Source: Rhodosorus marinus CCMP1338 (Eukaryota > Plantae > Rhodophyta). Taken from it: a DNA stretch of 64,000 nucleotides. A model generated the notes under the pieces. It worked only from the letters and a program-made list of their open reading frames with translations, was not told the origin of the DNA and searched no databases. Of this stretch, positions 18,101 to 64,000 are shown piece after piece. The stretch lies in assembly GCA_029953675.1 (NCBI GenBank), contig JAMWBK010000010.1, positions 1,240,001 to 1,304,000 on the forward strand, read 5' to 3'. Position 1 is the first letter of the stretch. Every line of letters begins with the position of its first letter. The translations under genes were made by a program, and so were the position numbers.

Positions 18101-19990
18101 CCCTGACACCCTGGCTAGGGGACTGACCGCGATCGAAGCGATTGCACGTCGCGTCGGTTTGACTGTGGAAACAGAAAAATGTCGCTTTCTCCCCGCGAGG
18201 GACGTGTCGCTGAACTCTCTGCCACCCACTCTGCGACTAATCAGCGAACGTGAAGGGTTCGAACACCACGGCGTCGGATTGGGGACTGACAACTTTGTCC
18301 AAGCATCCTGCGAGCGAGTTTTGGCACGGCACAAGCAACTCACCGACGCCATTGAGCACCTACCCGACAGCATGCTGCAATCGGCCTCCTTGCTTTCCCG
18401 CTTTTGTGCCGGTCCCAGACTCAACTACTGGTTGCGCAGCCTGCCTCCAGCTTGGAGCTCGTGGATCGCGGCTAAAGCCGACGAAATGACCCTGCAACAC
18501 TGGGGAACGCTCTTGGATGAGCCCCTCGATCTTGAAGCTGCTCCCGACAGGGACTTAATTCGTGCACAGATCGCTCTACCGTTGCGATTAGGGGGATTCG
18601 GCGTCGCAGGCCGTGGGCTGGTATGCTCGCCAGCGGCGGTTGCCTCCTGGGCTACCGCGCTGCGAACGTTGGTGACCTTCCAGATGCGAAGTGCCTGCCT
18701 CTTGGCTCGAGCTTTGACCAACGAGGATCCAGTGACCCTGCCGCCCCCGCTTTTGACAATTTATGATGGTCTTCAACACGCGTTCAGGAGGTGCAACGCC
18801 GTGCCGGACGCAAATCGGTCCCGCTTTCGTTCCTGGAGGGAGCTGTTATGGGGACGAGCTGAAGCGATTGAGGATTGTCCCCTCGACCGAGTTCTTGCCG
18901 ATGACGGAGAGGCTAGCCCCGGGTCCCCTGTTGCAGACTACCCGGGTTTGAGCCGATTGTGGAGCTCCCGCACTGATGTGATTCAACATAGCCTCACCTG
19001 GGGCCAACACAGTGCCGCTCACACAGTCATGCTCAATTCTCCTCTCACGCCGCCTACCACTGCCGCTCGTCTCCGCGGCATGGGAGGCCACCTCTCGCAC
19101 TTGTGGTTAACCACTCTACCGTCGTCATTGAGTCATCGTCTCGATGCTTTCCAGTTCCGTTCTGCCGCACGGATCTATCTCGGTTTGCCACAGGCTCCGT
19201 GGCACTCTAATCGGCCGTCTTTCTGTCAGGGATGTGAGAGCCGGATTGACGCTTGTGGCTACCACTTCCTGGGTTCCTGCGGACTGTTGCGAGGTCTCCG
19301 TACGAGGCGTCACACTCGCCTCAAGTACATCCTCAGCGAATTTTTGACTCGGATAGGGCATACGGTTGAGGTTGAGTCGGAACTGCCCAGATCCATCTCG
19401 GACTCTGCACCGCCCCGTTGTATAGCCGATCTCCTCGTCTCCGACGCTGCTGCCAGACGCTCAACATATGTGGACCTTGCGATTACCTGCCTCGTGGCCA
19501 GCGCCCACCTCACCGCAGCCGCCCGCCGCCGGGGGGCCGCGGCTTCGGTGAGGTAGCCCTTCGAAGAGTTAAGGAACGACGGTATGCTGAGAGCATGGCC
19601 AGTCTGCCTTGCGCTGAGGGTCGCTCTCACCGGTTCCAGCCATTCATTGTGGAAAGCTTTGGTCACGTCGATAAGTCGGGTTTAGAGTGGTTGCGGAAAT
19701 GTTTTGCTGAGCATCCTACTGAATATTTGGCGCTCTTGAGGCGTTGAAGTGTCTCCCTTTGGCGATATTCCAGCCACATGCTTTCCGAGGCGCGCCATCG
19801 GCGCCTGGGGTTGCATGCTTCCCTCCCTAGTTATTAGTTCATCTTCACGCCTTGCGTAGCGCTTCAGGCTATGCTAGTAAAGTCCAGTCCAAATGACTAC
19901 GCTGGCGAAATAAACTCATTCGAGTATTGGCGAAACGCAGAGAGGCTTGGATGCAAAGAGTTGACCCAAGTTGCTCGATTCGGTCCGAGA
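15149..19990 (+). mobile_element. Degenerate hAT (BED zinc finger, DUF659-like) transposase gene with introns, split by a CRE insertion
   Basis: BED finger (VWEGF..CQCLRC..LNKHQAAC), PDRRTIASSILD, IVMDRWT, TDNAP, CLAHQTNLL, PTVTRWYS, AWCLDPRLKG. The frame resumes after the CRE as NDYAGEINSFEYWRNAE..ELTQVARF (dimerisation domain). Several in-frame stops. Confidence 0.85.
17013..19890 (+). mobile_element. CRE-clade non-LTR retrotransposon (RT plus CCHC plus restriction-like endonuclease), subfamily A, 8-bp TSD, inactivated
   Basis: RT motifs PGPSGL, LRPIG, QVGVG, VDFRNAFN, GVQQGDP, YHDD; zinc knuckle CQGC..HFLGSC; RH..L; IADLLV..YVDLAI; KERRY..FQPFIVESFG. TSD AAATGACT at 17005-17012 and 19891-19898. 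Frameshifts at ~17740 and ~19550; stops at 17793 and 19745. Confidence 0.95.
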
Positions 19991-35800: not shown

Positions 35801-38800
35801 TCGCCATTTGTACTCGATTCTCTCATCTCAACAGGTACTTGAAGAAGACGAGAAAGGAGAACCGGTCCTCGCGTCGTTGAGTGACGAGGAATTGCTGTGG
35901 CGGCTGAGAATGTTGGCGCAGGCATGTAGGTCCTGCGGAGATGTCAAGCCGTACTGCGATCGGCTAGTTTGCGCTTCGTTCTTGGCCATGCAAAAACCGT
36001 CGCGGTCCGTGTACAAAGCAGGAGGGCGTCTCCTACGAGGACTGTTGGAGGGTTTGACGGCTGGAAAGGTGGCATTTGGATCCGGCACTGGTGGAGAGGT
36101 AGAGGAGGGGAACGTGTACAATTTGGAGTGGCGAAAGCCGAGGGATGAAGAATGGGAGGCTGCTGAGGTAGTGCTGAGGAGGGCTCTCAACCTAGCAAAG
36201 GAGACGGTGACTGCCAACGGCAAAGTTGATCTGACCGACCGAGAGAAGGTTTTCAAGGCGTTGCGCATGCTGCACGCGACACAGCGTGGAGGCCGCTGGG
36301 TGTTGAGCGGGGCGCTCACAGAGAAGGCCAAAAATACTCGATGCAGAGAGGGCGAGCTTCTTTCGAAGAAGGACGCGAGGTATATTTTGACAAAGCCTCT
36401 CGCTGCTGGGCTCGGCGGAGAACTCGGAGGCAAGAGAGAGTCTGTCGCGAAGGAATTGTGGGCAGATATCTACTCGTTCATACTGGAGATCCTCGTGTGC
36501 GTGGAAGAGGAGAGGCCAAATGATAGTCTGCTTTTGTATAGGTGCTTGGAGCCTATAGAGTTGGCGCACGATCCGTTTAAGCGCTCCACTTCTGGTCGTA
36601 TGATAGCTCACTCCGCACGAGGCTACAAGAATGCGTATAAACCAGTTATGGAAATGAAGCGTAGTTTCCGCGCAGAGGGTGGTGCGGGACGTATGGTCCC
36701 TGGATTCATCATGAAGCTTCGTGTGGAGGCACTTCATGAGCTCCGCCTCAGCCTTGGCGCGCAGGGAGGCTACGACTGCGAAGAGGTATATGTCGATGTC
36801 CTCGAAGGGCTGAAAAGACTGGCGGTGAACGATTTCCCAAAAGTTCGGGACGAGGCACGAGGAGCCCTCACGAGGGCACTTCGGGTATGCAAACCACAAC
36901 AGCGGAAAGTGACAATGACGAAGTTCATCGAGGTGCTCGACAAGTCAGCAGTGCGGGGTCCGAACGGAACCTGTGACTATGAGCGGATGATGGGTTCCGC
37001 AGATGTGCTGAGGGCGTCTATGGTGAACCAGCATATAATGCGAGATTGGAGTTTGCTGCGTCCAGTTGCTCTTGCAAGTCTGCGTGCTCTGATGGTTTCG
37101 GAGAGACCTGATGCCGCGATGGAAGTCAATGCCTTATACGCCAAATTGGCCGCGTGTCTACGTCCAATTGGGATCGAACCTCTGCAGATTTTAAACTCGA
37201 AACTGGACGGAGTGGATGAGAGTTCGAGCAATGACTTGTCGACTGCGCAACTGCACGAGTTTCTCGAGTTGAACAAGTCGCTTTTGACTATGGTGAATAC
37301 GTCGAATGGGAATGGGGTCGACCCAGGTCCAGCGCCAGGAATAGAAGGGCATTGGAAGCTCAAAAGCCTCGTAGCCACGACGTTGTATACCAACCTTCGA
37401 TTTGCACATCCTCCCGCTTCGGAAGTGGCGAAATTCTTTGCTGAGAGCATGGGATCGGATCTGATGGCTCTGAGGCAGGTTTCTAAGAAGGCGATGTCCT
37501 TGCTACTTGCATTCCAAAAGCGCAGGATAGAGAAGGATGAGGGTGATCGCGAAGTTTTGTCCGCTATTGAAGGCGTGCTTTCTGAAGATTTCATAGACCG
37601 TCTGTTGCGCGTACTTGCACTTGACGAAGGACTGGATATTTCCGAGAGCGGTGATACCGATGGCTTTTTCGGAGCCTTGTCACTCACGTCGTTGTCAAAG
37701 CATTGTGACGGAGATGCGTGTTGGGCTCTCGTTGGTGGTCGTCCGTGGCCTTCGTCCTGGGTCGCTAGATCGCGAGACACGTTGAGCTTAACCAGAGTGC
37801 GGTTGATGGAAATCATTTTTTCTACGTTTGGTTCTCCTATGCTCCGAAACTTCAGCGCCGCTGTGAGCGCGTTAATCAGCAGCGAAGACCCGATTCCCGG
37901 TGTCACGAAGGAAAACTCCCGGGTTTTTGCAGCAGAAGTAGTAGCAGGAATCGCTAGGGGAATGCGGATGGAGCATTCCGAAAAGGAACGGAACGCGACG
38001 GAAAGCGATATCAATGCCGTGAGCTCCTGGGCTAAGGAACTGCTTGGAGCGTTCTCCGGGCACGAGGGAATGGTGAATGGAGGTACCTTGATCCGTTTCT
38101 TTGTGTCGGGAGAGGAAGGCACAGTTGCAAGAAGCGTCGCGAAGCTTGTTAGGTCGGAACTTTTCGAATCGCCAATTGTTGATCTTGAGGCTCCTGCACA
38201 TTCTCAAGCGCGACGACTTCGATATCTTCACGCCAGTATTGCTGATGAGGAACCATCGTTTTCTGACGTAAGCACTTCTTTCCGTACGTGAAACGGCAAT
38301 GACGATACCCTAACCCCGCCTTTTCCTCTGCTTCACAGGCCCCGCTTGATAAGGCGATATCGGAGCTGACGGAGCCCCACGTTTTCTCTCATCCACTGAA
38401 GCACGTACGAGAGGAGATTGCTCGCTGTATGGCACTTCTTTCCTCATTCACTTCAGAGTCCATCGGAGAGACCTACGGGCAAAAGATTGAACAAGTTGCT
38501 GGAAGGCTTAAAGTTCAGACCAAGGAGGACGAGCTCGAGATATCTGAGGAAGACAAAAAACAGAGGTACGTCCAATCGTCATGAGTCGGTGGTTTGCATG
38601 GACCTCTTCTCACTGATTCTCGTACGTCAAAACGGTAGGTCAAGGGAGAATGATACTTTGTCAAGATGGGTATCTGTGGTACACTGGAACGGGGATACTC
38701 ATTCTTTTGGGGAGTTCTTGACAAAGCTTCTTCCAAGCTTGTTCGCCTGCCTGGATGACAGTGACCCGGAAAGGGTGAGTCGCCTATATCCTTTTTTTAG

Positions 38801-46572: not shown

Positions 46573-48067
46573 GACTCCCCTCCACAACCCTCAGGAAATA
46601 CCACCCGCAAAAAACAAACCCTTCCCTCCCCCCCCCCCCACACCACCAAAAAAAACACAATATATTACTCCCAAAATCCCAACAAATTCAGATACAACTA
46701 AGATCTTAGTCTGTAAAATTTATACACTCTCTTCTCACTCTCTTCTCACTCTCTTCCCCAGCGTCACCCTCAAAGCCCCCCTTCCTCAAAACTAATCCAT
46801 TCCCCTTCAAGTAGGTTTTCGATTTCACATCATCATCAAAAAGCAATCTAAGCAAAAAGAACCAAAACCATCCCAACTGTTCCCTCCTCTTCCCACCCTC
46901 CCCCTTCCCCTCTCTCTCTTTCTTCGTTTAGAACTGACCATTTCAACTCAAAATCTACTCCCCTAAAGTAATTCACGAGTTACAATTATCTATATCTAAA
47001 ACCCCCTACATATATATTAGTTTATTGTAGTTTTTTAATTTATATATGAAGAATCAAGATGAATAAGCTATTTTATTAAATAATTCATTTCTAATAAAAG
47101 GTTTAATCTAAATTAAAATGATATACGATTTAATTATTGTATTTAATATGATATTTTATTATGTTTATATATAATAATTTTGTATGTATATTTTAGAGGG
47201 GTTGTTGTCTACGTGTGTTTAGGAAGATGGCGAAAGTTGAAGGGGTGGGTTGTATTTTTCGAAATGGACGCGGTTGGTCGTGGAGTGGAAGATAATTGAG
47301 AGAGGGGGTGGGGGAGGAGGGGGCAAAGGAGCGCTGTGGAATTGAAACAGTGGAATGGGTAGAATGGGATACTGGATGGAGGAGGGACACCGATCCCCTT
47401 CCTTCCAGAGCTGATGAGGAATGGAAACATGAAGATGATCGTGCAGACCACCGGCGAGGTTTTTCTTTTTCTTTCCCTCGTGATATACATATTTTTTGTT
47501 CTGTTTTAATGAGAAGATCGATCTTCACATCCTATGCAGTCTTCAGGTGGACGGCGATTACCTCGGATTCGGGAGAACCGCTTTTGGATAGAACGCATTT
47601 GTATTTGAGTCGGGTTTTTTAGAAGTAGATGTATAGGTAGTTTTAGTTGTTGAGTTATCGTATCGACTACGGTCTGACGTGTTTTGAAGAAGGGCTTACC
47701 TGATTCCTATCGCTTCCATGTAGATTGTCGCGAGATACGGCTCGGTTCGGAGTTGCCCAATGCAGCTTTTCTCTTCTCGATTCAAATGGGAATAAGATCT
47801 CCTGACCGATCGACTCAGAAGTTTCTGCTTGATAGTCACGTTTCAGTCATGCCCGTAAGTTCCATGTTGGGTCGATGCCCGACGTCCTTGAACACCAACC
47901 GTCTCGTTAGTATCAGTCGTACAGAGGATGCATTGGTTTTCACTGAGGGAGGTGCTGGTGGATCGCAGCTCTATGAAGCTGAGCTTGAGAGTTTTTGGCC
48001 TTGAAAAGGTGTTAATCTGGTCATCTGTGAAGGTCTTGTTGAGTGTATTGGTATGAGGAGGACGACA

Positions 48068-50860
48068 ATGATCGCTGGGTTTCTAAATTCAGCTGTTGTC
48101 GATCGGCAATCGCGACATGGAATCCACAGTTGCACGCGTAGGGTGCGTTCCAAGTCAACTTCCGCGCAGGGTTATCGTCGCCGCTCAGAGGTTGTGATGC
48201 TCGCTGGCTCTGAAGCGGCTGTACTTGAGCCAGATGGCTTAGCAACTGGTGAGGCCGAGCCGGATGAGCCGAAGCGACCGCGAGCATGGAAGAATGTCCT
48301 GCTTGGATTATGCTTCGGTTTTATCGCGGGCATGATGGGTGCTTTAGCAGGTCTAGGAGGTGGTGTGATACTCATCCCTCTTATGACCGGCGTGCTTGGT
48401 ATAAGCCAACATGTCGCTCATGGTGCATCGCTCGTTGCCGTTGCATTCACTGCATCTGTTGGTGCAGCTTCTTACGCACTGAAAGGGGGCATTGTCAGAG
48501 TATCTACTGCGCTATTGATCAGTACTCTTGCAGTGGTAACAGCGAGAATTTCTTCCCAATTCGCCCAAGCAGTGAAGTCTGAAAACCTGAAATGGTGGGC
48601 GGCGCAGGGCCTAGCTAACATTCCTTGCTGGACATGGAAGCATAAGACCTTTCGCATGCTCACGAGTACATCCGCTCTGTAATTTAGGTACTTTGCGCAA
48701 TACTTGGTGTTCGCTTCGCTTCTACTCCTGGTTCAACCACTTTTTCAGCAGCTGCAGTTGTTCGGCGGCGTTCAAATGGAAGGGATGGATCTAAAAGTTC
48801 AAAATGGTTTCATCACCACCCTGCTTGGACTTGTCACTGGAACCGTCACAGGTCTCGTAGGCGTAGGTGAGAGTTGTGCATCAACAGAAGCCTTTCGAAA
48901 TCCTGAAAGATTTCAGATCATTGTTATCGAGCCAAGCCTGACCATCGCTTCCTGTACTGACGTTTGCCTGAAGGCGGAGGCACGATCATGGTGCCGGGAA
49001 TGACGATATTATTGGGTTTTGCACAGAAAACGGCGCAAGGAACAGCTCTTCTGGCCTCCATCGCTCCATCCATAGTATCGGCCACCACGTACATGGCATC
49101 CGGAAACGTCGTGCCTTCCCTGCTTTATGGAATCCTCCCTGGTGTTTCTGTTGGGTCGCTCGTTGGAGGTGAGGATCTTCAGCGGTGATCATCTTGTAGT
49201 TCTCTCATTTGTGGCTCAAACGTGTTCCGATTTCTTTTTTGGTTATGCCCCAAACCAGCGAACATCGCTGTCCGGTCCCAGGATGGTTTCTTACGGCTGT
49301 TCTGCGCTTCCTTGCTTCTCCTCTCGGGTAGGTGTAAAAAGCTCATCACAACCCCCAACCAAAAGCATGTCAAACCCGCTCGTCTCATAGATCACAACTT
49401 TCCTGTTCCGCTTTTGACAGGCTTGCGCACGCTACTTTCCACGAAAAGACCTGTTCAGACAGCCGAGGAAGAAGAGGGTAAGCGGATGGGGTTGCATTAG
49501 TCTCGTCCAGCTTTTCTGCCTTAAGAAAGTGCATGATTTGCTTACTTCATATTCGTTCGGTTATTGCAGATAACGAGATCCTGAAACCTAGCAAGAAGGT
49601 ACCAGAAGAGGGTTTCGTGACTAGCTCAAGATGTAAACTTCACTACAAGTACCTCAACCAAGGGGTCAAGGGAAAAAATCCACTGGTATTGCTGCACATG
49701 GCCCCCAGGAGCATGGACGAATTCAAAGAGTTCGTTGAGGAGATGGCAAATAATCGCGCCTGGAAGAGGTGCGGTGAGGGACCAGCAAGAGTATTTCTAT
49801 GAGTGTGAGTCTCACAATCACGTTTGTATCGACGCCATATGTTGTTGTGTTTCAGGCCGGTGATCCTCTTCGATCTACCAGGGTATGGGATTTCTGATCG
49901 GTTGAAAGATATTCCAATGAAGCGCTTAGCGGATGAAATCCTGCGCGGTTTACGAAGCCTGGGCATCAGGAGCAAAGTTGATGTTTTCGGTCATCTGCTT
50001 GGGTATGCACTTGCTGCGCGACAACGTTGTTTTGGATTTGCCACTCACTACCTATGGGCTTACAATGTTCCGTTATCGTCGCTGTGAATGCTTCAGAGCA
50101 CATGTGGCTATGTCCATGGCTAGTAGGAAGCCAAAACGGGTGAGAAGACTTGCTCTGGCTGATCCTATTTATCTCACTCCAGAGACCAGAGAGATGGTTG
50201 CGGGTTGGGCAAAAGGAGTGCCGAAGCCAAAGGTAATCAGCACAGATATGTTGCAGTAGGTCTTACGCGAGGATACCAACTCACACGACGATTCCTTCTC
50301 AATCGAATTAGATCGATGAGAATGGACAATTCCTCGCAGACGTTTGGAACAAGAGGTCCCACTTTGTGTCTCCGGATCTCAACTACAGGTGTGTTATGGA
50401 TGAACTGCGGGCCGCTGATACAGAAGAGAGTTCTTCCTTTTCGGTAGGTTTCATATCTTGGAGTTTTCGATACTCGTACTGCAGTGACTAGCCATACTTG
50501 TATTGAGCAGTGCTTCTGGCTCGTGATGTGTACAGGTTTCGAAGACTCCTATTGAGGACGTCTTGCCCAAAGTTAAAGCTCCAAGCCTAGTACTTTGGTC
50601 TTTAGGAGTGGTTGGATTATTTGACAGCTTCGGTTGGAAGATCGGAGAACACCGAGCGTTGGTAGGCACACACAGCTACTCCGTACGCGCTTTGCCTCAG
50701 TGGTCGCTGGTGATTCACTCTTCGTTTGTCTTCGAACTGATAGGTCGAAACAGGGCTACCTAAAGCTGACGTCATAGAGATAGCCGACGCGAATATTGAC
50801 GGCTTGTGCACTCAAACCAGCGCCTACTCGGATCCAGTGTTTGAGTACCTCGAATCCTGA
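48068..50860 (+). CDS. Plastid-targeted TauE/SafE (DUF81) permease, probably fused in frame to a C-terminal alpha/beta-hydrolase-fold domain
   Basis: Two TauE half-repeats (GALAGLGGGVILIP..AHGASL; GLVGVGGGTIMVP..AQGTAL). A phase-1 GTAAGC..TTGCAG intron (49478-49569) joins EEEE-G|AT-NEIL to LLHMAPRS..FDLPGYGISD..GHLLG..LALADP..KAPSLVLW..EYLES*. Confidence 0.8.
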
Positions 50861-51078: not shown

Positions 51079-53038
51079 TCACGGATTTGTCGTTGCCTGC
51101 CTCTTTTTTGCAAGTTGCTTCCACATCTCAGCTTCACTCAGCTCCTCCACCTCCTCCGCTTCCAGGTCTACGCGGATAGTTTTCAGCTTCTTACTTAAGG
51201 CTGTTGGAACTGCGGCAGCGATATAGGTTCCTTCAGCCAAGTACTGTTCGTATTCTATTGCTCCTTGGGTGTAGATTTCGTTCATAATGTCTCCCCGATC
51301 ATACGGAACAATTACTTCCACGTCGGTCATGAGCTCCGTAAGGACGAGACCAATCTCCGCTACGAGGTTTTCCAATCCTGAGGATTCGGGAAGGTTTGCT
51401 AAGGTTCAAACTGAAATACCTGAAAACCAATTTCATCAGTATTCACGAACCTTGTTTTTCCTTCGCCGACACTGCGATAGTATGCTCTCTTTCCACGGCA
51501 GCCAGCGATACATCTTCAAGTGACTCCTCCACCAGATCAAGCTTGTTCCACACGGTGATTGTTGGTTTATGTCCAGCGCCTAAGTCCTCAAGCACGGAAT
51601 CGACAGTCTCCTCGTGGGCTTCTCTCATAGGGTTCGAATAGTCGACGACATGGATGACGACATCCGCCTCCACGACCTCCTCCAAAGTGGCTCGGAATGC
51701 CGCGATCAGCTGCGTTGGCAGTTTTTGAATGAATCCCACAGTATCTGTACTTCGCACGGAACAAATCGTAGTTAGTACAATAAAGTAGCGCCGAAAAACT
51801 GCGGATTCGTCGAAAATCAACGCACCCGTTATAAGAACCTCTGGGTGAACGGCCATCTCCGGTAACTGTGCACGACGAGTGGTTGGATCCAACGTCGCAA
51901 AAAGCATGTCTTCTGCGAAAATTGTGGACGTTGTGAGCGCATTCACCAATGTGCTTTTTCCGGCATTCGTATATCCAACAACACTGACAGTTGGTATATC
52001 CATCTTCTTTCTAGAGTTACGTTGCCTCTTCCGATGAGCCCTGTGCGTTAGAAAGGTGGTCCCAACGTAACACTTTAGAACATCGGAAGGAAATCGGAAA
52101 TGCAATAGCCAATGAGGACCATGGACAATTCTGTTTGCATACCGAACGGATTCCAATGTTCTTCTAAGTGCCGAAATCTTCTCATTAATTATTCGCCTGC
52201 GAAAGCACAAAAAAATTGAGCTTGAGCGTCGTTACCCATCTTCAGATGTCCGACAAACTCCTGTCACCTCACCTGTCTGATTCAAGCTGGGTTTCTCCCG
52301 GCCCTCGCAACCCCACACCACCCTGCCCAGATTGTCTTTCCAGATGGGTCCACAGCCTGGTCAACCGCGGCAATCTGTATTGGTACAGGGCCAGCTCCAC
52401 CTGCAGCTGACCCTCGCGTGTCCGTGCGTGCTGAGCGAAAATATCGAGAATGAGGGCGGTTCTGTCCAACACTTTGATGCCTGGAAAAAGTCCGAATTTA
52501 GCCCCCGTCATTGGTACGTGGCACTGAAAGCTACGAAAAATGCCTTTTTCCTATCCTTCGCCTTACCTGCTTGTTCTCCTCCGAACGCTCTTTCCAGAGT
52601 GCGTTGCTGCGCGGGGGAAAGCTCATCGTCCAGCACGCACGTTTTCGCTCCAGTCGCAGCCATCGCCGTTTTCACTTCTCTGACTTTTCCGGAACCGATA
52701 TAAGTTGAAGTAACCGGAGCGCTCAACTTTTGAGTGTTAGACCCAACCACCTCCATCCCAGCGGTTTCCGCCAACTGTCCCAACTCCTCAAGAGACTCAT
52801 CAATCGAGAACATGGACCGATCTCTTGGAAAGTCGACCCCTACCAAATAACACTTCTCCGTGGGCTGAGTTTCCCGTCTCATATCCTCTTCTTCCTTGGT
52901 ACCATAGCCCATCAGAACACACCTCCTTCTCTCCCATTTTACGACCCGGCATTCCGCAGAATCAACATCCAACGAAGTCGAAGACCCTCGTCTGACTGGG
53001 CACCAACCCAGACCACCAACAAAACAAACACCAGACAT
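51079..53038 (-). CDS. hflX: Plastid GTPase HflX, multi-exon
   Basis: [94 protein letters not shown]; transit-like N-terminus. Confidence 0.95.
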
Positions 53039-54362
53039 TCTAACCAAGCAAGACAGAACTAAACAAAACAAGCACTCTCTACAATTCCAAATCACCTCCA
53101 CAATCCCTTCGCTCCGTGCAACAGAAAACTCATTCTGTTCAACCCCCGAAGTATACAGATAACCTAACCCCCAACCAAAACGACTACCGAACAACCTCTT
53201 CGCACTCAGAACGATTATGTAGGAAGATATTCTTATCTAATACAGCTCCGTTTCCTTACAAACCCCTAGAACTTCGCTCGCTTTACCTTCCAACGCAACC
53301 CATCCCAACGCTAGGTCCTCACCATCCCCATTAATGGTAAGCAATCGAGGATTTCAGAAAGGTATCTCATGTGATCGGACTATTTGTGAATATGAATCAG
53401 GGAGTATAAAAACTTCAAATTCATATTCATAAAATATCCGATCTTACTTATTTCATAAAACTTAGAGCAGTTTCTTGTGTTAATGTGAATTATATATTTT
53501 CTTGTGGGAGCTATCGGAGATGACTGAGAGTTGTACGTCTTGACGTCCGACAATGGATGGATGAGACAAGCGCGTTTGCCGTCTTGACGTTTTTCAGGAA
53601 TGTAGTTTCCACGTCATGATGTATGACGCCTTTTGACATGATAGGTGTTGGGATGTTTGAACTTTTTGCGTCGAGACGTATCACAGAGACGGGGTTCGCA
53701 GCGGATCGTATTTTTGCGTTTGCTGTCCTGATGTTTGAAGTGGTGCAGGCGGTTGGAAGGAGTTTCCATGCCATGATTGATGACTCTTAGAAACGGTATG
53801 GGATTCTTCTGCTGGAGTTGGAGGTGTAGAAGAGCTGACAAGGAGAACCTTGGACTCCTTGCGCACATCGCAGCGGGCTGGATGTCGAGCTCAGCAGATA
53901 TTGTCATGTGACGGTGGGGATTCCTGCCTAGTCGTTTTACAACTTGAGGACGCGCTCTGTGGGCGAGCGTACGAAACATAAGAGTCAGAGACAGATATGC
54001 AGTGACGGGAGGACGGATCTACATACGGAAGGTTTGCGGTGGGGGCCGCTAGTCGTCTGGGAAATCCTGATACGCCAGCTGGGCGCAATGGGCCATACTT
54101 GCTCCGCGATTACCGCAAGTCATCTGGGACAAAACAAACCTACAGAAACTGTCAGCGAATTCGATCCCATTACTAACCGCTACAGAACGTAATGGATACC
54201 GAGTGGAACTTCGCTAGCCGGCTCTGTATACTTGTTTTGCCTCCAAACGACTTGGAGTTCACTGATCGCCGAGCCAGCGCTTGCCGTCCTAGAAAAGAGG
54301 GAAAGCCTCCCTCCTCTGAAAGCCTAGTTGTCTCTTGAGGACAAACCGGAACCACGCTCGAA

Positions 54363-57300
54363 ATGCCTCAGAAATCAAACCGTCCGTGGTTTTACATCGT
54401 GACGTGTGACTCTTTCGGAAACAAGCAGGATATGTTTCACGTCGTGAAATTTGATGTGACGCCGGATTCTGATGAAGTTCCACGTCAAGATGCACAGCAT
54501 CTTCTAGAGAATTGGGGATTAAAACGGGTTTCCAAGCTCTCAAGTTGAAGGACGAACGGTTTGATATTTGCTCCAAATCAAGCTGTATGATTCGAGCAAG
54601 GAGACCGCGGTTTTTGTATTCAACTTGGGAATTCCTTTGCAGTCGGGTCCCGGAACCAAGGCATATCAGTTTGTTCGTATAGACTGGACTAGTTACTGGG
54701 AGTCTACTCACAGGGCAGCTCTTGAGAATGGATCACTGCAAACTGAAGCATCCGAACGAAGAAGCCGTCACTTTGGAAGGCCCCGCCGGCGTGTTTTGCG
54801 TAACATGCTCAAGAAACATGCTCACCGACGAGTATGCGCTTTCATCAATAAAGGTTGGTACGGCGACGAAATTGAAGCTGGTGAGTTGTGAAACATCGGT
54901 CAGGGAGTAGACTCCATTCTTGTCCATCGGGCTCGGCTGCAGCTGAACAAGAATGTTTTGAAAGGGAATATCTAGGAACGCCGAGAAGCTTCGAGGTTTC
55001 CTGGAAGGAAATCCCGAGGCTCTGCGACGTTTGTTTTGCTCGCTAACCACAGCGCAGATCCAGGCTGCAGGAAACTTGGACCAGGAACTGTCCACTTTGA
55101 CAACTGACATACAGGTACGGCCACCCGAACCCTCTTTCAACCGAAACATTCGTCCCGCTGAAGTAGGTGCTGGGAAGGTGTGGTTGGCGTTTTCCAGTAC
55201 TGGGTCATGGGTAGCTGAATGCTGTCAGCTGCTGTTGGTTTCACTACGGGACATAGGCGTAGATGCGACAGGCTTCGCTCAGATTCTCCTAGTTCTTGTC
55301 AGCATCGTGGACGAGGCAGAAAATTTGACCGTTGACCTGAGTGAAATTCTGTCCCTCATTGCTTCAGAGGTTGGCGCCCCTCTGCGAGATGCGATGTCGA
55401 AGCGGTTAGCTAGAAAATCCTCTGAGCTGGTTTCAAGATGTTTCATTCTGCTGTCAAAAGTGTTTGACAAACTTGCTCAAGCCGAAAAGGATCAGGTCAT
55501 TCTGGTGCTTTGCGAGTTGATCAAGCCCAGTTGCCCGGGTTTGTTGCCTTTCCGTTTGGTTGTTTTCATATTACAAGTCGTTTCGTATGGATCGCGACTG
55601 AAGCGACTCCTGATGCTTATATGCATGTTCAGATCATATCCGAATCGATGTTCTCTCCGCGCTCCTCGAAGGCCTACAGAGGCAAAGTTTGGTTCCGAGC
55701 AAGCACCATACCGAGCTCCTGGAGTCCTTCAAGCTCAGCCTAATGGCTGAAGACAGGACTGTTCGCAACCTCACCTGTGCTTCTTTAGAGGTCCTCGTCC
55801 TTCTTGACGAATACGCGCTTAAAACTTTGGAGTGCGGCCTGATCGACTACTTGTATGAGGTCATCAGGCAATCTGGAGAGCTTAAGGATGGACGGGACAG
55901 TGACTGTCTCTCCTGGTTGCTGAACATTCTGTATTCACTGGCCCATCATTTGCCTTTCAAGACTACTCTAGCCTATGGAATGCGCATCCTCCTGCAACAG
56001 ATGAGCCAAGTGGGTGCAGTGCACGCTGGACCTCTGTTGCGGTTGCTGGACCAGTGTCTTTCTTTTCCGGCATCCGAAACTTTCGAAGACCGAGACGCGA
56101 AATTTTACTTGGAATCTCTTCGAAGGATTTCCGATGAGCACTCGATCGTCGTCGATTGTGCTGGGTTGAGCGGACTGGTGGAGTGGTTTCGCCTCTCTCC
56201 AGAACTTATTGAGAACGTCGTACACGTTGTAGCAGATTCTGCCGCGCATGCGAAGGAATTCCCGAGCTTTTTGCACCCGATGCACACGATGAGATTGATT
56301 CTCTCGAAGCAGCTTCAAGAAGCTGAGCGAATGGACGAGAGGCTCAGGTCCAAGTTGCTTTCCTGCACTCTGGAGAGTTTGCTCCCTGTGAGCGCTTGCG
56401 TGACGTATCCACAGGATCTGTCATCTGCGGGCGACGTTTGGATAGAGGTGTTTGGCCTTGCAGCATTGGCAATGGACCCGGACATTCATGATGACGAGGC
56501 TTCTCTGCACCGTACTGGTGTTCATTGTCAACGTACGATATCGTTGACCAAAGTATTTGAGGTGCTTGAGAGAAACTCGAAAAACCTCTCGCTGGTGGGA
56601 ACGGGTCGGGAATTCTTGAGAAGCGTTGCAGTTGCCGTTCATCCGCTGTCCAAAGGGATCAAGCTCCTTAACTCGGAAATTCCCGGAACGAAATTGGAGT
56701 TGATCACCGGCGTAGAGTGCGGTTCAGCCGAGTGTTGTCTCGTTTTCTTGCTAAGCGAATATGAATCCGGTCAAGACTTCCCCGACGTCGAGGACGTCTT
56801 TTGCCGCGTGGCCAAATGCCTTAGCGTCAGGTCCGTATCCACTGCGCGGGAGCGATTCTGGCAGCTGCGAGTGCTCTGCCTTTGTCAGCAGAAAATGAGG
56901 TGCACTGCAGATACCCTTGCCAGCGGAGGTGACAGGCTACCCCGAGCGTTGTTTCTCGACATGTTGTCCTATGTTCCTACATCAGATGACGTCAATCCAG
57001 AGGTGGACACGGGGGTTTTGAGCTGGTTTCTTGCACAAGTGGAAAAACTGGAAGAACTCTACGTTATTGTTAATCTTTTCTGCAGACATAAGTTCTCGCA
57101 AATCAGCCGGCGCACGTTGCTTCTGGATTCACTGTGTAGCCGAACCGCGGCTGACTTGGGACTTGTAGAGGGTTTGTTGAAAACTGTTGCGAACAACAAG
57201 CCCTCCGAGATTGTCCCCGTCGCACTGGAAATGGCAACGCGATCAGTTGACTTCTCGGCAGCCGTCTTGAAGGTTGATGTGAACGTGACCTTCCTTTCTA

Positions 57301-58058
57301 CAGAGCGGTTCGTCAACTTTTACCTCCGTGCTTGGCTTCGTAGCGGTGTGGAAGATCTGGATGAATTCCCTCCGCGGCAAGCGCTCGGTTTCCTATTAGG
57401 AACCATGCAGAGGGACGGTGTACATGAGGGTGGAGTAAAGTTTTTGAGGGAATTCTGCAGACAGGCAAATATTCCGGGCAAAGTTTCTCCAGGGACCTCA
57501 GCGTCGATCAAGTTCTTGAGGACTCATGAGTTCATCTTGAGCTTGATCAGACAAGTACGAACGGATGCGCAGCAAAATCACTACCCACGCTTAGGACCAC
57601 ATGAGATGACTGGAAACATTCAGGCGGAGGTGTTACGTCTATTCTCGCATATACCAGAACTCGACCGAGAATTGTTCAGCTCCCCTGCCGAATGGGCTGA
57701 TAGAATAATGATTGAGTTTGAAAGGGGTCAGTACACAACTCTTGAGGCCGTTTTGGAGCTCATGTCTGCATCGACAAGCTTCCACAGCGAATTCAATCCA
57801 ACATCCAGGATGTTGGTTCTCATGGTGGCCAATTTATGCGCATCCGGTAAGCGACATCCAGCAAGCTATCGCTGTTTTGCCCGTCGGATACCAATTCTCA
57901 CGACGGCCACGTAAACAGACAATTTCAGGCTGAGCGCAGCAGCCAAATTCGCGATGGACAGGCTCACATCCTACTGGCCAGAAGCAAACCTTCTGACCTC
58001 GTGCACCACCGCAGCTCGCTTCTACATCCCGTACGAGACCTCGACGATATCTGAGTAG
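54363..58058 (+). CDS. Large hypothetical protein: possible ubiquitin-like segment followed by a long leucine-rich alpha-helical (ARM/HEAT-like) region; 5' exons unresolved (may begin ~53.5 kb)
   Basis: Long ORFs of 239 and 741 aa join in frame through an intron at ~55540-55632. The last exon after a GTAAG..AAACAG intron ends ..YETSTISE* at 58058. No family is recognised. Confidence 0.7.
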
Positions 58059-59232: not shown

Positions 59233-61681
59233 ATGGGAAACAAGGCAAGTGGTGTCAGGAAGGGTAGGACCAGCACATTCTCCGTGAACTTGTCTGTTCT
59301 TTGCTGTAGTTTTTTGGATCTGTTCGACGCTTCCTGGGCGTATTTGCTGACCATGTGGTCTGTATTCCTTCGTTACAGTTTTTAAGAAGAAAACGCCCGA
59401 GAAGGAGGATACAAACGCAAGTACGACAAGGGCGACCCCAGCACCCTCGAAACCCGCTCAGACAGCTGGTACGGCCGGAGCGAGTGCCAGTGCTACAGTA
59501 AAGAACAAATTAAAGCCTATTTTCAAAGAAGAGAAGCCGGAAAAGCCGCCGACTGAAGATGAGAAACTTGGACTGCGACATATTGACTTTATCAATGTAC
59601 ATCGGAAGGACTATACGGGGAGAATTGAACTGCTTCAGGGCAGAGTGGAGAAACTATCAAAGGCTGATGAAACGGACCTACTTATCGTGTACCTATCTGA
59701 GAGGGGATCATACAAAGGGAATCGGGATTCGGCTCTTGCAGGGCTGAACAGGTGTGGTATTTCGCTTGAGCAGCTGGAGAAAGAGACAAAACCTCAGCCG
59801 AGCTACAGAAAACATTATCACTGTTGGTTGTCTCGGCAGATCAGTAGACCACGGCCACCAGGGTTCGAATACAAAAGACTGCTTGTGTACGAGGACCCCG
59901 GCGAGGAACTCACGCAGGATGACAACATCGTCCTCGACATTATGAACTGCATGACAACAGTTATTGGAGGTGACATTCAGATTGCTTCGGTCATGCTCCC
60001 ACTGTCGGGAGCACTGCTCTCTCCTTCGTTGAGGAAGCATTTTGTGCAAGCTGCAATCAAAGTCACGTACGCGTGGATGATGATGGGTTTACCGCTAAGG
60101 ATTGTGAAGATTCTGCTTCCTGATTCCGACATTTCTCGTGACATAGAAGTTTTCCAGCATACAAAGGAAAAGCTCTTACGTTCCAGCTCGCTGCCTGCCT
60201 CGCTGAACGAGTATGACGTCTTCATGAGTTATTCAGCCGCCGAGAAAGCGGCTGCAGAGCGGATGATAAGCACGCTGAGGTCGAAAGCTCCTGGTATTCG
60301 AATCTACGATGCTGAGGCCAGGGACGTCAAGGTACGAGACAGGGGTATTGTTCACCAGCCAGTAATGGAGGCAATTAGCAAGTCGAGGTTCTTCCTACCG
60401 CTTCTCTCGGACAGCTTCTTTAATGCAGTTGAATGCACGGAGGCATTTTCTTTGGCCTATTGTCGTGATTTTGACTTGCAAGGGAACTTTATCATTCCGC
60501 TGTACTGGAGGAACTGTGACCTGACGCCTATGGCGAGAAGATTGGTGGCAACGGAAGGAGTGGATTGTCGAGAGGCGTCGTTTGAAGCTGCCTACCCAAT
60601 TTTGGAAGAAATCCTGCGCGCAGTGAAGCAAGCCGATCGCCATGGCCCCACAGAGATAACACATGACGCTATTGAGGGAACGCAGCCCGCAGAGATGCAG
60701 CTCGCGGATGCACTTCTCATGAAACGGAAGAAGATGGAGGAACACAGCATGATTTTTGAGCCGACCGACCGGGACAACAAGACCTATGGATTTTTGGACA
60801 AGAGTTGGATAGATGAGTGGTCCATTGACTTTAAGGCTCTCATTTTCGGGGCGCGGATCGGTGCAGGAGGATTCGGTGAGGTGTACAAGGGCAAGTTTAA
60901 GGACGACATGGTTGCGGTGAAGACGCTACAGAGAGTTGAAGATGATGAACCCAAGGATGTTGTTAAGGAATTCATGGTAGAAATGAAGTTGATGTCGGGG
61001 CTTGTTCACTCGAACATCGTTAAGTTTATTGGAGCAGCTGTAGAACCTCCAAATCTTGCCATTGTTCTAGAGTTTATGCAGGGCGGTTCGCTCTACCGTG
61101 CTATTCACCGTCGAAGAAGGAACATGATGGGCGCGTTTCCTTTGCTGAAAGCGACGTGGATTGCTTATGGTGTGGCTAAGGGAATGGAATACTTGCACTC
61201 GCAGTACCCGGTTATAATTCATCGAGATTTGAAATCACCAAATATTCTTCTCGGCAGTAACGTACACCAGGTGAAGGTTTCAGATTTCGGCTTGTCGCGA
61301 CTGCGAGTTTCTACGTACGTTAAGACGGGCCCTGGTGGAACTCCAGAGTGGATGGCACCGGAACTCCTTCGCCAAGAGAAATTTGACGAATCGTCGGACG
61401 TCTTTTCTTTTGGTGTCGTCTTGTGGGAGTTACTAACATGTGAAAAACCGTGGAAAGATGAACACCCAATGCAAATTGTATTTAAGGTTGGTTCTCGCGG
61501 CGAGAAACTAGTTCTTCCGCCCACCGTGCAAGCGCCTCCGGAGTTCAAGGATATGATAAACTCGTGCTTCAACGATAAGCCCGCTCGAAGGCCCCAATTT
61601 TCTAGCCTGGTCAAGTCGCTTGAGTTCATCCTGCGCAAGATTGAGGCCCAGCGAGCCGCCGCCGAGAATGCTGACAAATAG
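59233..61681 (+). CDS. N-myristoylated (macro-like)-TIR-Raf/TKL protein kinase, 2 exons
   Basis: MGNKAS start; a phase-1 intron joins into the 678-aa ORF frame. TIR: YDVFMSYS..IYD..AISKSRFFLPLLS..FIIPLYW. Kinase: IGAGGFGEVYKG, VAVK, HRDLKSPNILL, DFGLSR, GTPEWMAPE, DVFSFGVVLWEL. Confidence 0.93.
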
Positions 61682-62130: not shown

Positions 62131-64000
62131 TCACAGCACCTTCAGTATCCTCCGCATATCTTGATTCACGGAAAATCCTCTGTCCTTGAAAGCCTTGGAT
62201 GACAAAAACTCTCCGGTGTTCGTAATTCCCATCTCACGGGCTCGCGCGTTGAAGTCGGCTAGATCAATTTCTACGTTCACTTCGCCGCTGTCGTGCGTGA
62301 CTGTACCGTGAGAAGTCAAGTAGTCTCTGACCAATCTACTGACAAGATAGAACAGTAGCTCGAAATCATTCCGATAGTACGTTAAGTACTTGAAGAATTT
62401 ACGCTTGAGGCCTCTCATGACAGAGAATTTCTGGCTCTGGAAGAAGGACTCCAGCATCACGCTAATCGCAACGTTCACGTCATCGTCTCTGACGTAGCTG
62501 CGCAGATGCATCCTCGCTCGGGCTTCCGACATACGGACGATAGACTCCAGGTGCCTTAACGCGATCGGCATTCCTCCACTGCTCAGTGACTCACGCCGAA
62601 GATCGATGTACAGGCGGCTGATTTTCTCGTGGTCTACGTTCCCGAATCGGGGGGACGCGGTGCGGCGGGCAAAGATGAGATACTTCCTCAGCAGGTCCTG
62701 CGGAATCAACTCGACGTTGGTCTCAGACATGACCTAAGGGAGGAACGCATTACAAACTGGCTTAGAGACTCACAAGTTCCACGAAAGATAAAAATCGAAG
62801 GTTCTATGAAATCACGCACCGGCGCCTCGTTTGCTTCAGCGAGCTTGGATGTTCTAGACTCCGACGGATGAGACGAACTGTGCGAATTGACAACGAATCG
62901 TGCGAGGTTCTCATCAACCAGGGGATCAACTGCATCTCGGACTACGCAAAGGACGTCGAATCTCGACAGAATCGGCTCGGTCAAGTCCACGTTCTCGGAG
63001 AAGCTTACGCTGGAGTCGTACCGTCCTTTCACAGGGTTTGCCGCGGCAATAACGGAGCACCTTGCCTGTAGCGTTGTGACAATGCCAGCTTTGGAAATGG
63101 AGATCGTTTGCTGTTCCATTGCCTCATGGATTGAAGTTCGATCTTGATCATTCATCTTATCGAACTCATCGATCAAGCAGGTTCCCCTGTCCGCCAAGAC
63201 AAGCGCACCACCTTCAAGAACCCACTCCCCTGAAACCGCATCTTTGCGAACCGCAGCTGTCAACCCCACGGCAGAAGCTCCCTTGCCGGTGGTATAGACC
63301 GCTCTGTTTGCAGTCTTCTCAACGTACTTGAGGAACTGGGATTTGGCAGTTCCTGGATCACCCAGCAGCAGAACGTTGATGTCTCCTCGAATGCGATGCT
63401 TCTCTCCGACTTCCTTCGCTTGTCCACCGAACAAACTCAACGCAATAGCTGTCTTGATGTCCTTGTGGCCATAGATTGAAGGTGCCATGGACGCAATGAT
63501 CCTGTCCGCAATCTTCGGGTCCTGGGACAGTTTCCTCAGCTCAAAGATCTCATCATCAGTCAAATCTTCCGTAACGTCCGACTCATCCATCTTTCGGACG
63601 TAGTTTGCTCGAATAACCGTCGAGAAAACGGGGAAACCATTCTTGATGTTGAGGCTGATATCTGGGCAATGGGTATAGACCCCGGTGACTTCGACTGCAT
63701 CACCCGGACGAGCACAATCAATCAAGTCGGCTGTGATCATGACGTCCTTCTGCCTGGGCAATCGACCGGCTGGCACACTTCCGGGGCTCTCTTGTATCGT
63801 CATTCTCTGGAAGTTATCGAAGACCGTTTGCTCGGCGTTGACCTTGAAGGGCCCACGAGATCCACACTCGCTGCACTGTGAAACTGCCTTCTCCGGTCTC
63901 GCTCCTGCGACTCCTGTTGGGACTTGAACAGCTCCGCATCTTTGGCAATCCAACTTGACGATCTTCATATGCGGAAACACTCCAGTTCTTCTCGTAACCA
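62131..64000 (-). CDS. MCM2: DNA replication licensing factor MCM2 (3' part; 5' end outside window)
   Basis: [106 protein letters not shown]; intron at ~62735-62815. Confidence 0.97.

Follow-up and report, generated by a model that had tools for sequence, protein, structure and literature searches.

A divergent macro-fold domain and a TIR domain of apparently prokaryotic origin, fused to a TKL-type kinase in the red alga Rhodosorus marinus

Within a 64,000-nucleotide stretch of the red alga Rhodosorus marinus CCMP1338 (contig JAMWBK010000010.1, positions 1,240,001 to 1,304,000; hereafter the window, in whose coordinates positions are given), we examined a gene whose 777-amino-acid (aa) product contains, in order, a low-complexity, disordered tail (aa 1-73), a macro-like domain, a TIR domain, a linker and a tyrosine kinase-like (TKL) protein kinase. 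Profile and structure comparisons indicate that the region preceding the TIR domain adopts a macro fold, and the distribution of its homologues supports a prokaryotic origin for the macro-like and TIR domains as a single cassette. An earlier sequence-only reading had proposed that this region resembles a macro domain and hints at ADP-ribose (ADPR) sensing. We consider it probable instead that the algal cassette has lost the canonical making and reading of ADP-ribose and has been co-opted for the regulation or assembly of an intact kinase.

The fold of the N-terminal domain emerged from family profiles and structure prediction rather than from single sequences. Scans with the window domain against Pfam (2025 copy), NCBIfam (2026), PADLOC (2023) and PDB sequences were all empty even at E ≤ 10, and the Pfam Macro hidden Markov model (HMM; PF01661) left it unmatched at E ≤ 10, short of the gathering score. 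The same model matched one of 12 bacterial family members (E 0.16, also below gathering), the bacterial members otherwise giving TIR matches only. A 49-member family profile searched against all PDB sequences returned 30 matches at E ≤ 10, every one of which contains a macro domain (best E 7e-4); they include PARP14, Af1521, YmdB/MacroD, macroH2A, viral nsP3, carrier fusions and a de novo designed enzyme whose scaffold is the Af1521 macro domain. A bacterial-only profile likewise recovered macro domains only (best E 1e-4), and hhalign placed it against Escherichia coli YmdB (sequence 100% identical to 5cb3_A) end to end over 158 columns; the E-value is 5.7e-4, but the probability reaches just 29.5%. 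AlphaFold2 (AF2) modeled the window domain confidently, at a predicted local distance difference test (pLDDT) of 91.6 and a predicted template-modeling score (pTM) of 0.89. Foldseek with this model found 102 PDB matches at E ≤ 1e-3; the best 50 of the 102 all contain a macro domain, with target-normalized template-modeling (TM) scores of 0.58-0.73 for stand-alone macro chains, and are headed by macroH2A (E 5e-9, TM 0.70) and the second macro domain of PARP9 (TM 0.73). Entries labeled "SPX" among the Foldseek matches are macroH2A carrier fusions, judging by their molecule names. Because the two profile searches, the alignment to YmdB, and AF2 with Foldseek agree, we conclude from profiles and model together that the window domain is a real, highly divergent macro-fold domain, as the sequence-only reading had guessed; profile and Foldseek searches, checks of the kind that it suggested, both found macro domains. 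Membership in the macro superfamily holds at the level of the fold, where the domain superposes on solved macro domains, but not at the sequence level of PF01661.

The five motifs on which the guess had been based all lie in a single frame of the + strand (59624-60118), directly upstream of the TIR_2 match and the kinase, and the region it had marked (59575-60125) makes up most of the domain as bounded by homology and model (Table 1). Two of the motifs had been likened to canonical macro sequences, IELLQG to I-x-L-x-x-GD and SVMLPLSG to S-I-A-x-P-x-I-G, and the alignments recover both analogies, the first at strand 2 and the G-D loop and the second at loop 2. The GD itself is missing, the window protein reading GR.

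Relatives of the cassette reach far beyond the red algae. A word-indexed homologue search with the one sequence reached only four red-algal fragments, and the family came into reach only through an exhaustive HMMER search, in which phmmer with the single sequence against 1.84 billion representative proteins produced 192 matches at E ≤ 1e-3, 23 of them at E ≤ 1e-10, with best E-values of 1e-24 to Galdieria and 1e-14 to prokaryotic proteins. The closest homologues have the same architecture at 72-81% identity, those with traced sources coming from Gracilaria domingensis and Agarophyton chilense, and the Galdieria sulphuraria homologue is a 1008-aa TIR-kinase that is 34% identical. Red algae (Gracilaria, Agarophyton and Galdieria) are the only eukaryotes among the matches with a traceable source. 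Three distant TIR-kinases of 1236-1559 aa (P0013, P0014 and P0026), with very long Ala/Gly/Ser-rich inserts in their macro-like and TIR regions, are probably red-algal too, their composition suggesting a guanine- and cytosine-rich red alga such as one of the Bangiales. The fusion of the cassette to a TKL kinase is present in red algae from Cyanidiophyceae to Florideophyceae.

Most other homologues are about 340 aa long and carry the domain at residues ~4-190. TIR_2 follows it directly in all six small proteins that have any Pfam match, three shorter ones having none, and a local HMM finds the domain in 150 of the 152 proteins retrieved. A scan of one genome per prokaryotic species, queried with a bacterial-only alignment, located 80 loci across more than 12 bacterial phyla and in Methanotrichaceae and Loki- and Heimdall-archaeal bins, with genes of 340-400 aa, and a profile search of a 5.8-billion-protein collection yielded 392 clusters (90% identity) annotated only as "TIR domain-containing" or "hypothetical." The domain itself is unannotated in Pfam, NCBIfam and PADLOC, also in the bacterial members, and an HMM made from bacterial sequences alone matches the window protein at 86.9 bits. 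The sequence-only reading had pointed to such domains ahead of TIR domains in bacterial proteins, and hundreds of cases were found. Because the domain precedes a TIR in hundreds of bacterial and archaeal proteins while the traced eukaryotes are red algae only, derivation of the algal cassette from a prokaryote is well supported by the sequence comparisons. No donor lineage stands out when the prokaryotic matches are ranked by score, the top ones being scattered over Thermoanaerobaculia, Candidatus Uabimicrobium, Methanocrinis and cyanobacteria. Literature searches found no paper naming a macro-TIR fusion, with InterPro structural assignments and subscription journals outside their reach. We propose that the cassette domain represents a branch of the macro superfamily with a fixed TIR partnership, of which the red-algal form appears to be a degenerate, kinase-fused version.

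Although the algal domain retains the fold, its ligand site departs from that of its prokaryotic relatives at positions tied to ADP-ribose binding. Residue frequencies were counted over 211 prokaryotic members, in a register set by two family-profile alignments and hhalign to YmdB. The prokaryotic family keeps the macro G-D motif, with Gly in 99% and Asp (Asp24) in 97%; this Asp hydrogen-bonds adenine N6 in macro domains, including that of Thoeris ThsA (PMC11204291). No red-algal copy has Asp in the adenine-anchoring column, which holds Arg in the window protein and Galdieria and Ser in the other Florideophyceae. Loop 2 has Pro in 94% and Gly (Gly142) in 97% of the prokaryotic family; the window protein keeps the Pro and has Leu in the Gly column, though a Gly sits two residues earlier, and Leu occupies this column in the red-algal copies except Galdieria, which keeps the Gly. 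A Ser-Ala (S-A) pair at the end of strand 3, like the loop-2 Gly, is 91-99% conserved in the prokaryotic family and lost in the window protein. Near-invariant positions of the family comprise Ser40-Ala41, Tyr46, Asp74, Arg76, Cys81-Trp82-x-Ser84, Glu103, Trp162 and Gly166. In red algae Ser40 (99% in prokaryotes) and Ala41 give way to Tyr-Leu or Ala-Arg, and Asp74 (98%) to Ser, Glu or Ala, while Asp35, Tyr46, Arg76, the C-W-x-S signature (Cys 99%, Trp 100% and Ser 99% in prokaryotes), Glu103 of the "YED" motif, Pro137 of loop 2, and Trp162 and Gly166 of the last helix persist. In the red algae, columns with 97-99% conservation over the prokaryotic phyla have thus both changed and become variable, which argues for a different constraint on the ancestral ligand site in this lineage, and ADP-ribose sensing by the algal protein, with its adenine Asp, S-A pair and loop-2 Gly lost and Ala at the catalytic Glu position of its TIR domain, is not supported.

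The prokaryotic domain, for its part, looks like a nucleotide-binding, non-hydrolytic variant of the macro fold. The catalytic Asn of MacroD enzymes (N25 of YmdB) corresponds in the hhalign register to Phe42 in the bacterial family, to Ser in the window protein and to Ser, Arg or Ala across the algae, and the Gly-rich loop 1 with its catalytic Asp (GGGG-V-D) is absent even in the bacterial family, which has P-T-x-x-S-L-I-G instead. We favor a binder over a hydrolase because both the MacroD catalytic Asn and the Gly-rich loop are lacking.

The TIR domain appears to have diverged in parallel. Its Pfam TIR_2 match (aa 291-414) stands above the gathering score, at 38.5 bits against a cut-off of 28. 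Glu occupies the catalytic column of the alpha-C helix in 157 of 174 prokaryotic cassette TIRs (90%), within C-x-[ED]-E-F, a register that we checked against the WCWDEL of Cat1, where the catalytic Glu lies three residues after the Cys and just before a hydrophobic residue. The Florideophyceae, the window protein included, read C-T-E-A-F (Ala), Galdieria C-Q-M-L-F (Leu), and the three distant TIR-kinases with long inserts C-x-x-L-F (Leu). Judged by this Glu, the usual criterion, the algal TIR would not be an NADase, with some doubt left by a shifted Glu. A two-domain AF2 model of the window protein, built on a 65-sequence alignment, has pLDDT 88.3 and pTM 0.88 over 358 residues; because of this pTM, the model suggests that the macro-like and TIR domains hold a fixed mutual orientation as a rigid unit. 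Foldseek with this model again matched the macro part to macro domains only and the TIR part to the TIR domain of MAL (5uzb, target TM 0.70), and no PDB entry matches both domains, the best query-normalized TM being 0.41.

The kinase, by contrast with the cassette, is intact in its motifs: GAGGFGEV (505-512), VAVK (522-525), HRDLKSPN (625-632), DFG (646-648) and APE (670-672) are all present, from which we predict an active enzyme. We place it in the TKL group by its Pfam family and by the names of database entries (EDR1-like), not by phylogeny. Red-algal genes listed as "TIR+Pkinase" are on record in Pyropia yezoensis (py01330.t1 and py08661.t1), one of them up ~1.5-fold on infection with the oomycete Pythium (PMC6928737). 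These resemble the window gene in joining TIR and kinase in a red alga, a likeness known here from a Pfam domain listing; unlike the present analysis, the Pyropia study lists Pfam domains only, and an N-terminal macro-like domain is not recognized in it (PMC6928737).

We therefore propose, as a working model, that red algae took up the cassette once, from a prokaryote and in their stem lineage, that it was fused there to a TKL kinase and that it has been kept from Galdieria to Florideophyceae. In prokaryotes it would couple an NAD+-cleaving TIR to a nucleotide-binding macro-like domain; in the algae, where adenine Asp, loop-2 Gly and TIR Glu are replaced, it would be non-enzymatic. A lipid anchor may tether the rigid macro-like and TIR unit to the membrane, where the unit would control the kinase, plausibly by self-association of the TIR type, so that kinase domains meet and activate one another in trans, and the remaining cleft may accommodate a non-canonical ligand. 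The sequence-only reading had envisaged a horizontally acquired nucleotide-signal sensor, of which a prokaryote-type macro and TIR cassette on a eukaryotic kinase is supported and ADP-ribose sensing by the algal protein is not.

Several points weigh against this proposal. The red-algae-only status of the cassette among eukaryotes rests on few source-traced matches. In the Florideophyceae a Glu lies one residue before the canonical catalytic position of the TIR and might conceivably take its part. A pocket that still functions may be lined by the retained C-W-x-S and Glu of "YED" (the Glu at 100% in prokaryotes), the geometry of the cleft is read from alignments alone, and ligand binding in the absence of the canonical Asp is known from some macro-fold proteins. 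Kinase activation driven by oligomerization is drawn by analogy rather than from observation.

Of the competing explanations, the one that fares best takes the algal domain as a working sensor of ADP-ribose or of a TIR-made derivative that switches the TIR, the kinase or both, which we consider possible but unlikely. It accords with the macro fold found by AF2 and Foldseek, with the Asp and loop-2 Gly kept in prokaryotic relatives, and with the strong constraint on the domain seen in the 72-81% identity among Florideophyceae; in type II Thoeris the products of TIR enzymes are sensed by macro domains (PMC11204291), and the alga conserves residues at the cleft edge (the Glu of YED, C-W-x-S and the loop-2 Pro), of which the Glu and C-W-x-S could be ligand contacts. 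Yet the residue that contacts adenine is Arg or Ser in every red-algal copy, in a column that varies within the red algae, the S-A pair and loop-2 Gly are lost as well, and loop 1 lacks a Gly-rich phosphate cradle even in bacteria. The adjacent TIR is also without its catalytic Glu, which leaves no obvious source of a signal in cis for such a sensor.

A related explanation, which we hold to be doubtful, is that the algal protein is a single-chain, innate-immune-type receptor kinase whose macro-like domain has been retuned, through the change of Asp to Arg or Ser and the remodeled loops, to a ligand other than ADPR, on binding of which the TIR domains would assemble and the kinase become active at the membrane; the widespread prokaryotic macro-like-TIR proteins would then make up a hitherto unrecognized one-protein TIR defense or signaling system. 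Were this so, the ligand might be another nucleotide-derived signal or a modified protein, and a prokaryotic macro-TIR defense cassette would have been turned into a sensor for eukaryotic phospho-signaling.

A role as an ADP-ribosyl hydrolase of the MacroD type, removing ADP-ribosylation or breaking down a signal, is very improbable for the domain: although the MacroD-type enzymes YmdB, OiMacroD and Af1521 are among the Foldseek matches, the best structural matches are the non-catalytic macro domains of macroH2A and PARP9/14, and the columns described above hold neither the catalytic Asn nor the GGG loop with its catalytic Asp. Chance resemblance, or bacterial contamination or misassembly in place of an algal gene, is suggested by the empty single-sequence searches alone and is extremely improbable given the E-values to Galdieria and to prokaryotic proteins, the confident structure model, the GT..AG intron, the TKL kinase in the same exon, the MCM2 neighbor, and orthologues in three named red algae.

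Several known systems lie close to the algal protein. The prokaryotic TIR proteins of ~340 aa (HEU0076118.1 of Longimicrobiaceae, and those of Coleofasciculus chthonoplastes, Nitrobacter vulgaris DSM 10236 (L024) and Ca. Uabimicrobium amorphum (L038)) share with it the same macro-like domain, a TIR_2-type domain, their order and a similar linker, but they stand alone, with neither a C-terminal kinase nor a lipid-anchor tail, and they keep the adenine Asp, S-A pair, loop-2 Gly and TIR catalytic Glu that are lost in the alga. The non-catalytic macro domains (macroH2A-like, PARP9 and PARP14; PF01661 clan) share the three-layer alpha/beta/alpha fold (target TM 0.70-0.73) and have an x-I-x-L-x-x-G strand-loop and an S-x-x-x-P-x-x-x-G loop 2 at equivalent places; their identity to the window domain is only 12-17%, however, and the cassette domain has signatures of its own (C-W-x-S and F-E-P / Y-E-D), a fixed TIR partner and no Gly-rich loop 1. 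To our knowledge, macroH2A1.2 and macroH2A2 do not bind ADPR.

Type II Thoeris, which the sequence-only reading had invoked, also combines TIR and macro domains in one functional unit, a ThsB TIR enzyme and a ThsA effector carrying transmembrane and macro parts, in which an ADPR conjugate made by the TIR enzyme is recognized by the macro domain, whose Asp contacts the adenine (PMC11204291). There the two domains reside on separate operon-encoded proteins, with transmembrane helices joined to the macro domain, whereas the cassette is fused in macro-TIR order with no transmembrane segment and no PADLOC ThsA match. We considered a Thoeris-like operon for the cassette and rejected it because no conserved partner gene accompanies the prokaryotic loci; the cassette is a single fused chain with no transmembrane-macro effector, which is not the Thoeris arrangement. 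The animal TLR/MyD88-IRAK pathway offers a functional analogy to the proposed mechanism, in that its TIR domains lack the NADase glutamate and lead to the activation of a kinase of the TKL group; there, however, TIR and kinase are on separate proteins joined via death domains, whereas in the alga they form one chain with a macro-like domain and have an independent ancestry.

The gene model that yields the 777-aa protein requires splicing. The + strand frame is open from 59351 to a stop at 61681, and no ATG is present in this reading frame between the upstream stop (59351) and the domain, so a 31-nt first exon and a GT..AG intron are needed. The resulting MGN... start matches the N-termini of orthologues (MGNGISS, MGNITSS, MGNGLSS, MGNAPSN and MGNTLGK), and Gly2 and Ser6 of the window protein would fit the consensus for N-myristoylation. 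The genes near the TIR-kinase in the window are ordinary eukaryotic ones, encoding MCM2 (- strand), an HflX-like GTPase and a TauE family protein; because of the intron and the MCM2 neighbor, the TIR-kinase gene is a genuine nuclear gene and not contamination.

Table 1. Features of the TIR-kinase gene and its product in window coordinates
Feature	Position	Strand	Basis or remark
Exon 1: ATG + 10 codons (MGNKASGVRK), 31 nt	59233..59263	+	sequence reading, splice model
Spliceosomal intron GTAGGA...TTACAG, 115 nt	59264..59378	+	frame restored into KKKTPEKEDTNAS on splicing
Exon 2, through stop codon	59379..61681	+	spliced protein of 777 aa
Divergent macro-fold domain, aa 74-280 (~205 residues)	59567..60187	+	homology and structure model
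IELLQG(R), aa 93-99	59624-59644	+	motif in frame
Gly98-Arg99, place of macro G-D motif; Asp replaced by Arg	59639..59644	+	aligns with Af1521 GDIT and YmdB G10-D11
(T)DLLIV, aa 109-117	59672-59698	+	motif in frame
HCWLS, aa 158-162, family signature C-W-x-S	59819..59833	+	kept in alga
SVMLPLSGAL, aa 214-223, counterpart of diphosphate-binding loop 2 (S-I-A-F-P-x-I-S-T-G)	59987..60016	+	profile alignments, hhalign
LRIVKILL, inside aa 242-257	60071-60118	+	motif in frame
TIR domain, aa 289-430	60212..60637	+	Pfam TIR_2, E 1.9e-9
Ala366 at position of TIR catalytic Glu	60443..60445	+	C-T-E-A-F versus prokaryotic C-x-[ED]-E-F
TKL-type protein kinase, aa 500-758	60845..61621	+	Pfam PK_Tyr_Ser-Thr, E 1e-60

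Elsewhere in the window, the MCM2-type replication helicase (62131-63980, - strand) runs off the window end and occupies at least two open reading frames (ORFs), one with the MCM_OB and MCM P-loop regions and one with the MCM lid and MCM2 winged helix; its division over ORFs implies an intron or a change of frame near 62706-62730. Housekeeping genes include a TauE/SafE-type membrane protein fragment (48053-48679, + strand) and the HflX-like GTPase (GTP-bdg_N and MMR_HSR1) over two ORFs (51446-53194, - strand). A 584-aa ORF at 17802-19553 (+ strand) with a reverse transcriptase match (RVT_1, E 1e-11) is probably a retroelement remnant. Two + strand ORFs have no Pfam match at E ≤ 1e-3, one of 827 aa (35808-38291) and one of 741 aa (55689-57914) lying just ahead of the TIR-kinase gene. 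No second copy of the macro-like domain was found in the 64-kb window.

The prokaryotic loci offer little sign of a partner for the cassette. Across the 80 loci we found no conserved partner or effector gene beside it and no SIR2, SLOG or transmembrane-macro partner. The 120 immediate neighbors include 11 other TIR proteins and 6 TPR-S proteins, the rest falling into more than 100 unrelated families with scattered matches to defense models, and the recurrent neighbors (patatin, TPR-S and a second TIR protein) occur mainly in related Chitinophagaceae genomes. In this family (Agriterribacter and Terrimonas; loci L052, L054, L062, L063 and L071-L079), a recurrent island surrounds the macro-like-TIR gene; besides a patatin-like phospholipase and a further TIR protein, which has a CarboxypepD_reg domain, it encodes at least one TPR-S / MAP3K_TRAF_bd protein and in places several (for example L075:4644-5885, L063:2770-4212 and L052:9113-10405); it looks like a conflict or defense island. 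At L038:8001-10421 and L042:6731-9212 of Candidatus Uabimicrobium (Planctomycetota), two macro-like-TIR genes stand in tandem; they are among the best-scoring prokaryotic matches to the window and Galdieria cassettes. In the cultured strain Nitrobacter vulgaris DSM 10236 (L024:7986-9032) the gene is apparently split into ORFs of 86 and 257 aa and may reflect a frameshift or a pseudogene.

Beyond these stand-alone genes, metagenomic fusions place the cassette behind or before other modules (P0025, P0043, P0044, P0129, P0052, P0083, P0124 and P0140). Modules N-terminal to the cassette are a Hanks-type Ser/Thr kinase, an HSP70-like ATPase, the type VI secretion system sheath proteins VipA/VipB, FHA and a second TIR; one of the VipA/VipB sheath fusions also carries a kinase and FHA, and in one fusion the cassette stands in front of a CHAT protease and NB-ARC. 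Because the metagenomic kinase fusions have the opposite domain order from the algal protein, fusion of a kinase to the cassette arose more than once.

TIR domains are common to the immunity of bacteria, plants and animals, and our findings bear on the way in which prokaryotic TIR modules have reached eukaryotes and been rewired there. A fold can now be given for some 200 residues in these algal "Ser/Thr kinases" and in many bacterial "TIR proteins." The analysis defines a large macro-like and TIR family whose prokaryotic members, with their conserved Asp, loop-2 Gly and TIR Glu, are candidates for a self-contained NAD+/ADP-ribose signaling or defense protein. In the red algae, the presumed ligand-binding and catalytic residues have decayed while the kinase-fused cassette has been kept from Galdieria to Florideophyceae. 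By analogy with animal TLR signaling, the red-algal cassette looks like an independent case in which an enzymatic TIR would have become a scaffold TIR wired to a kinase.

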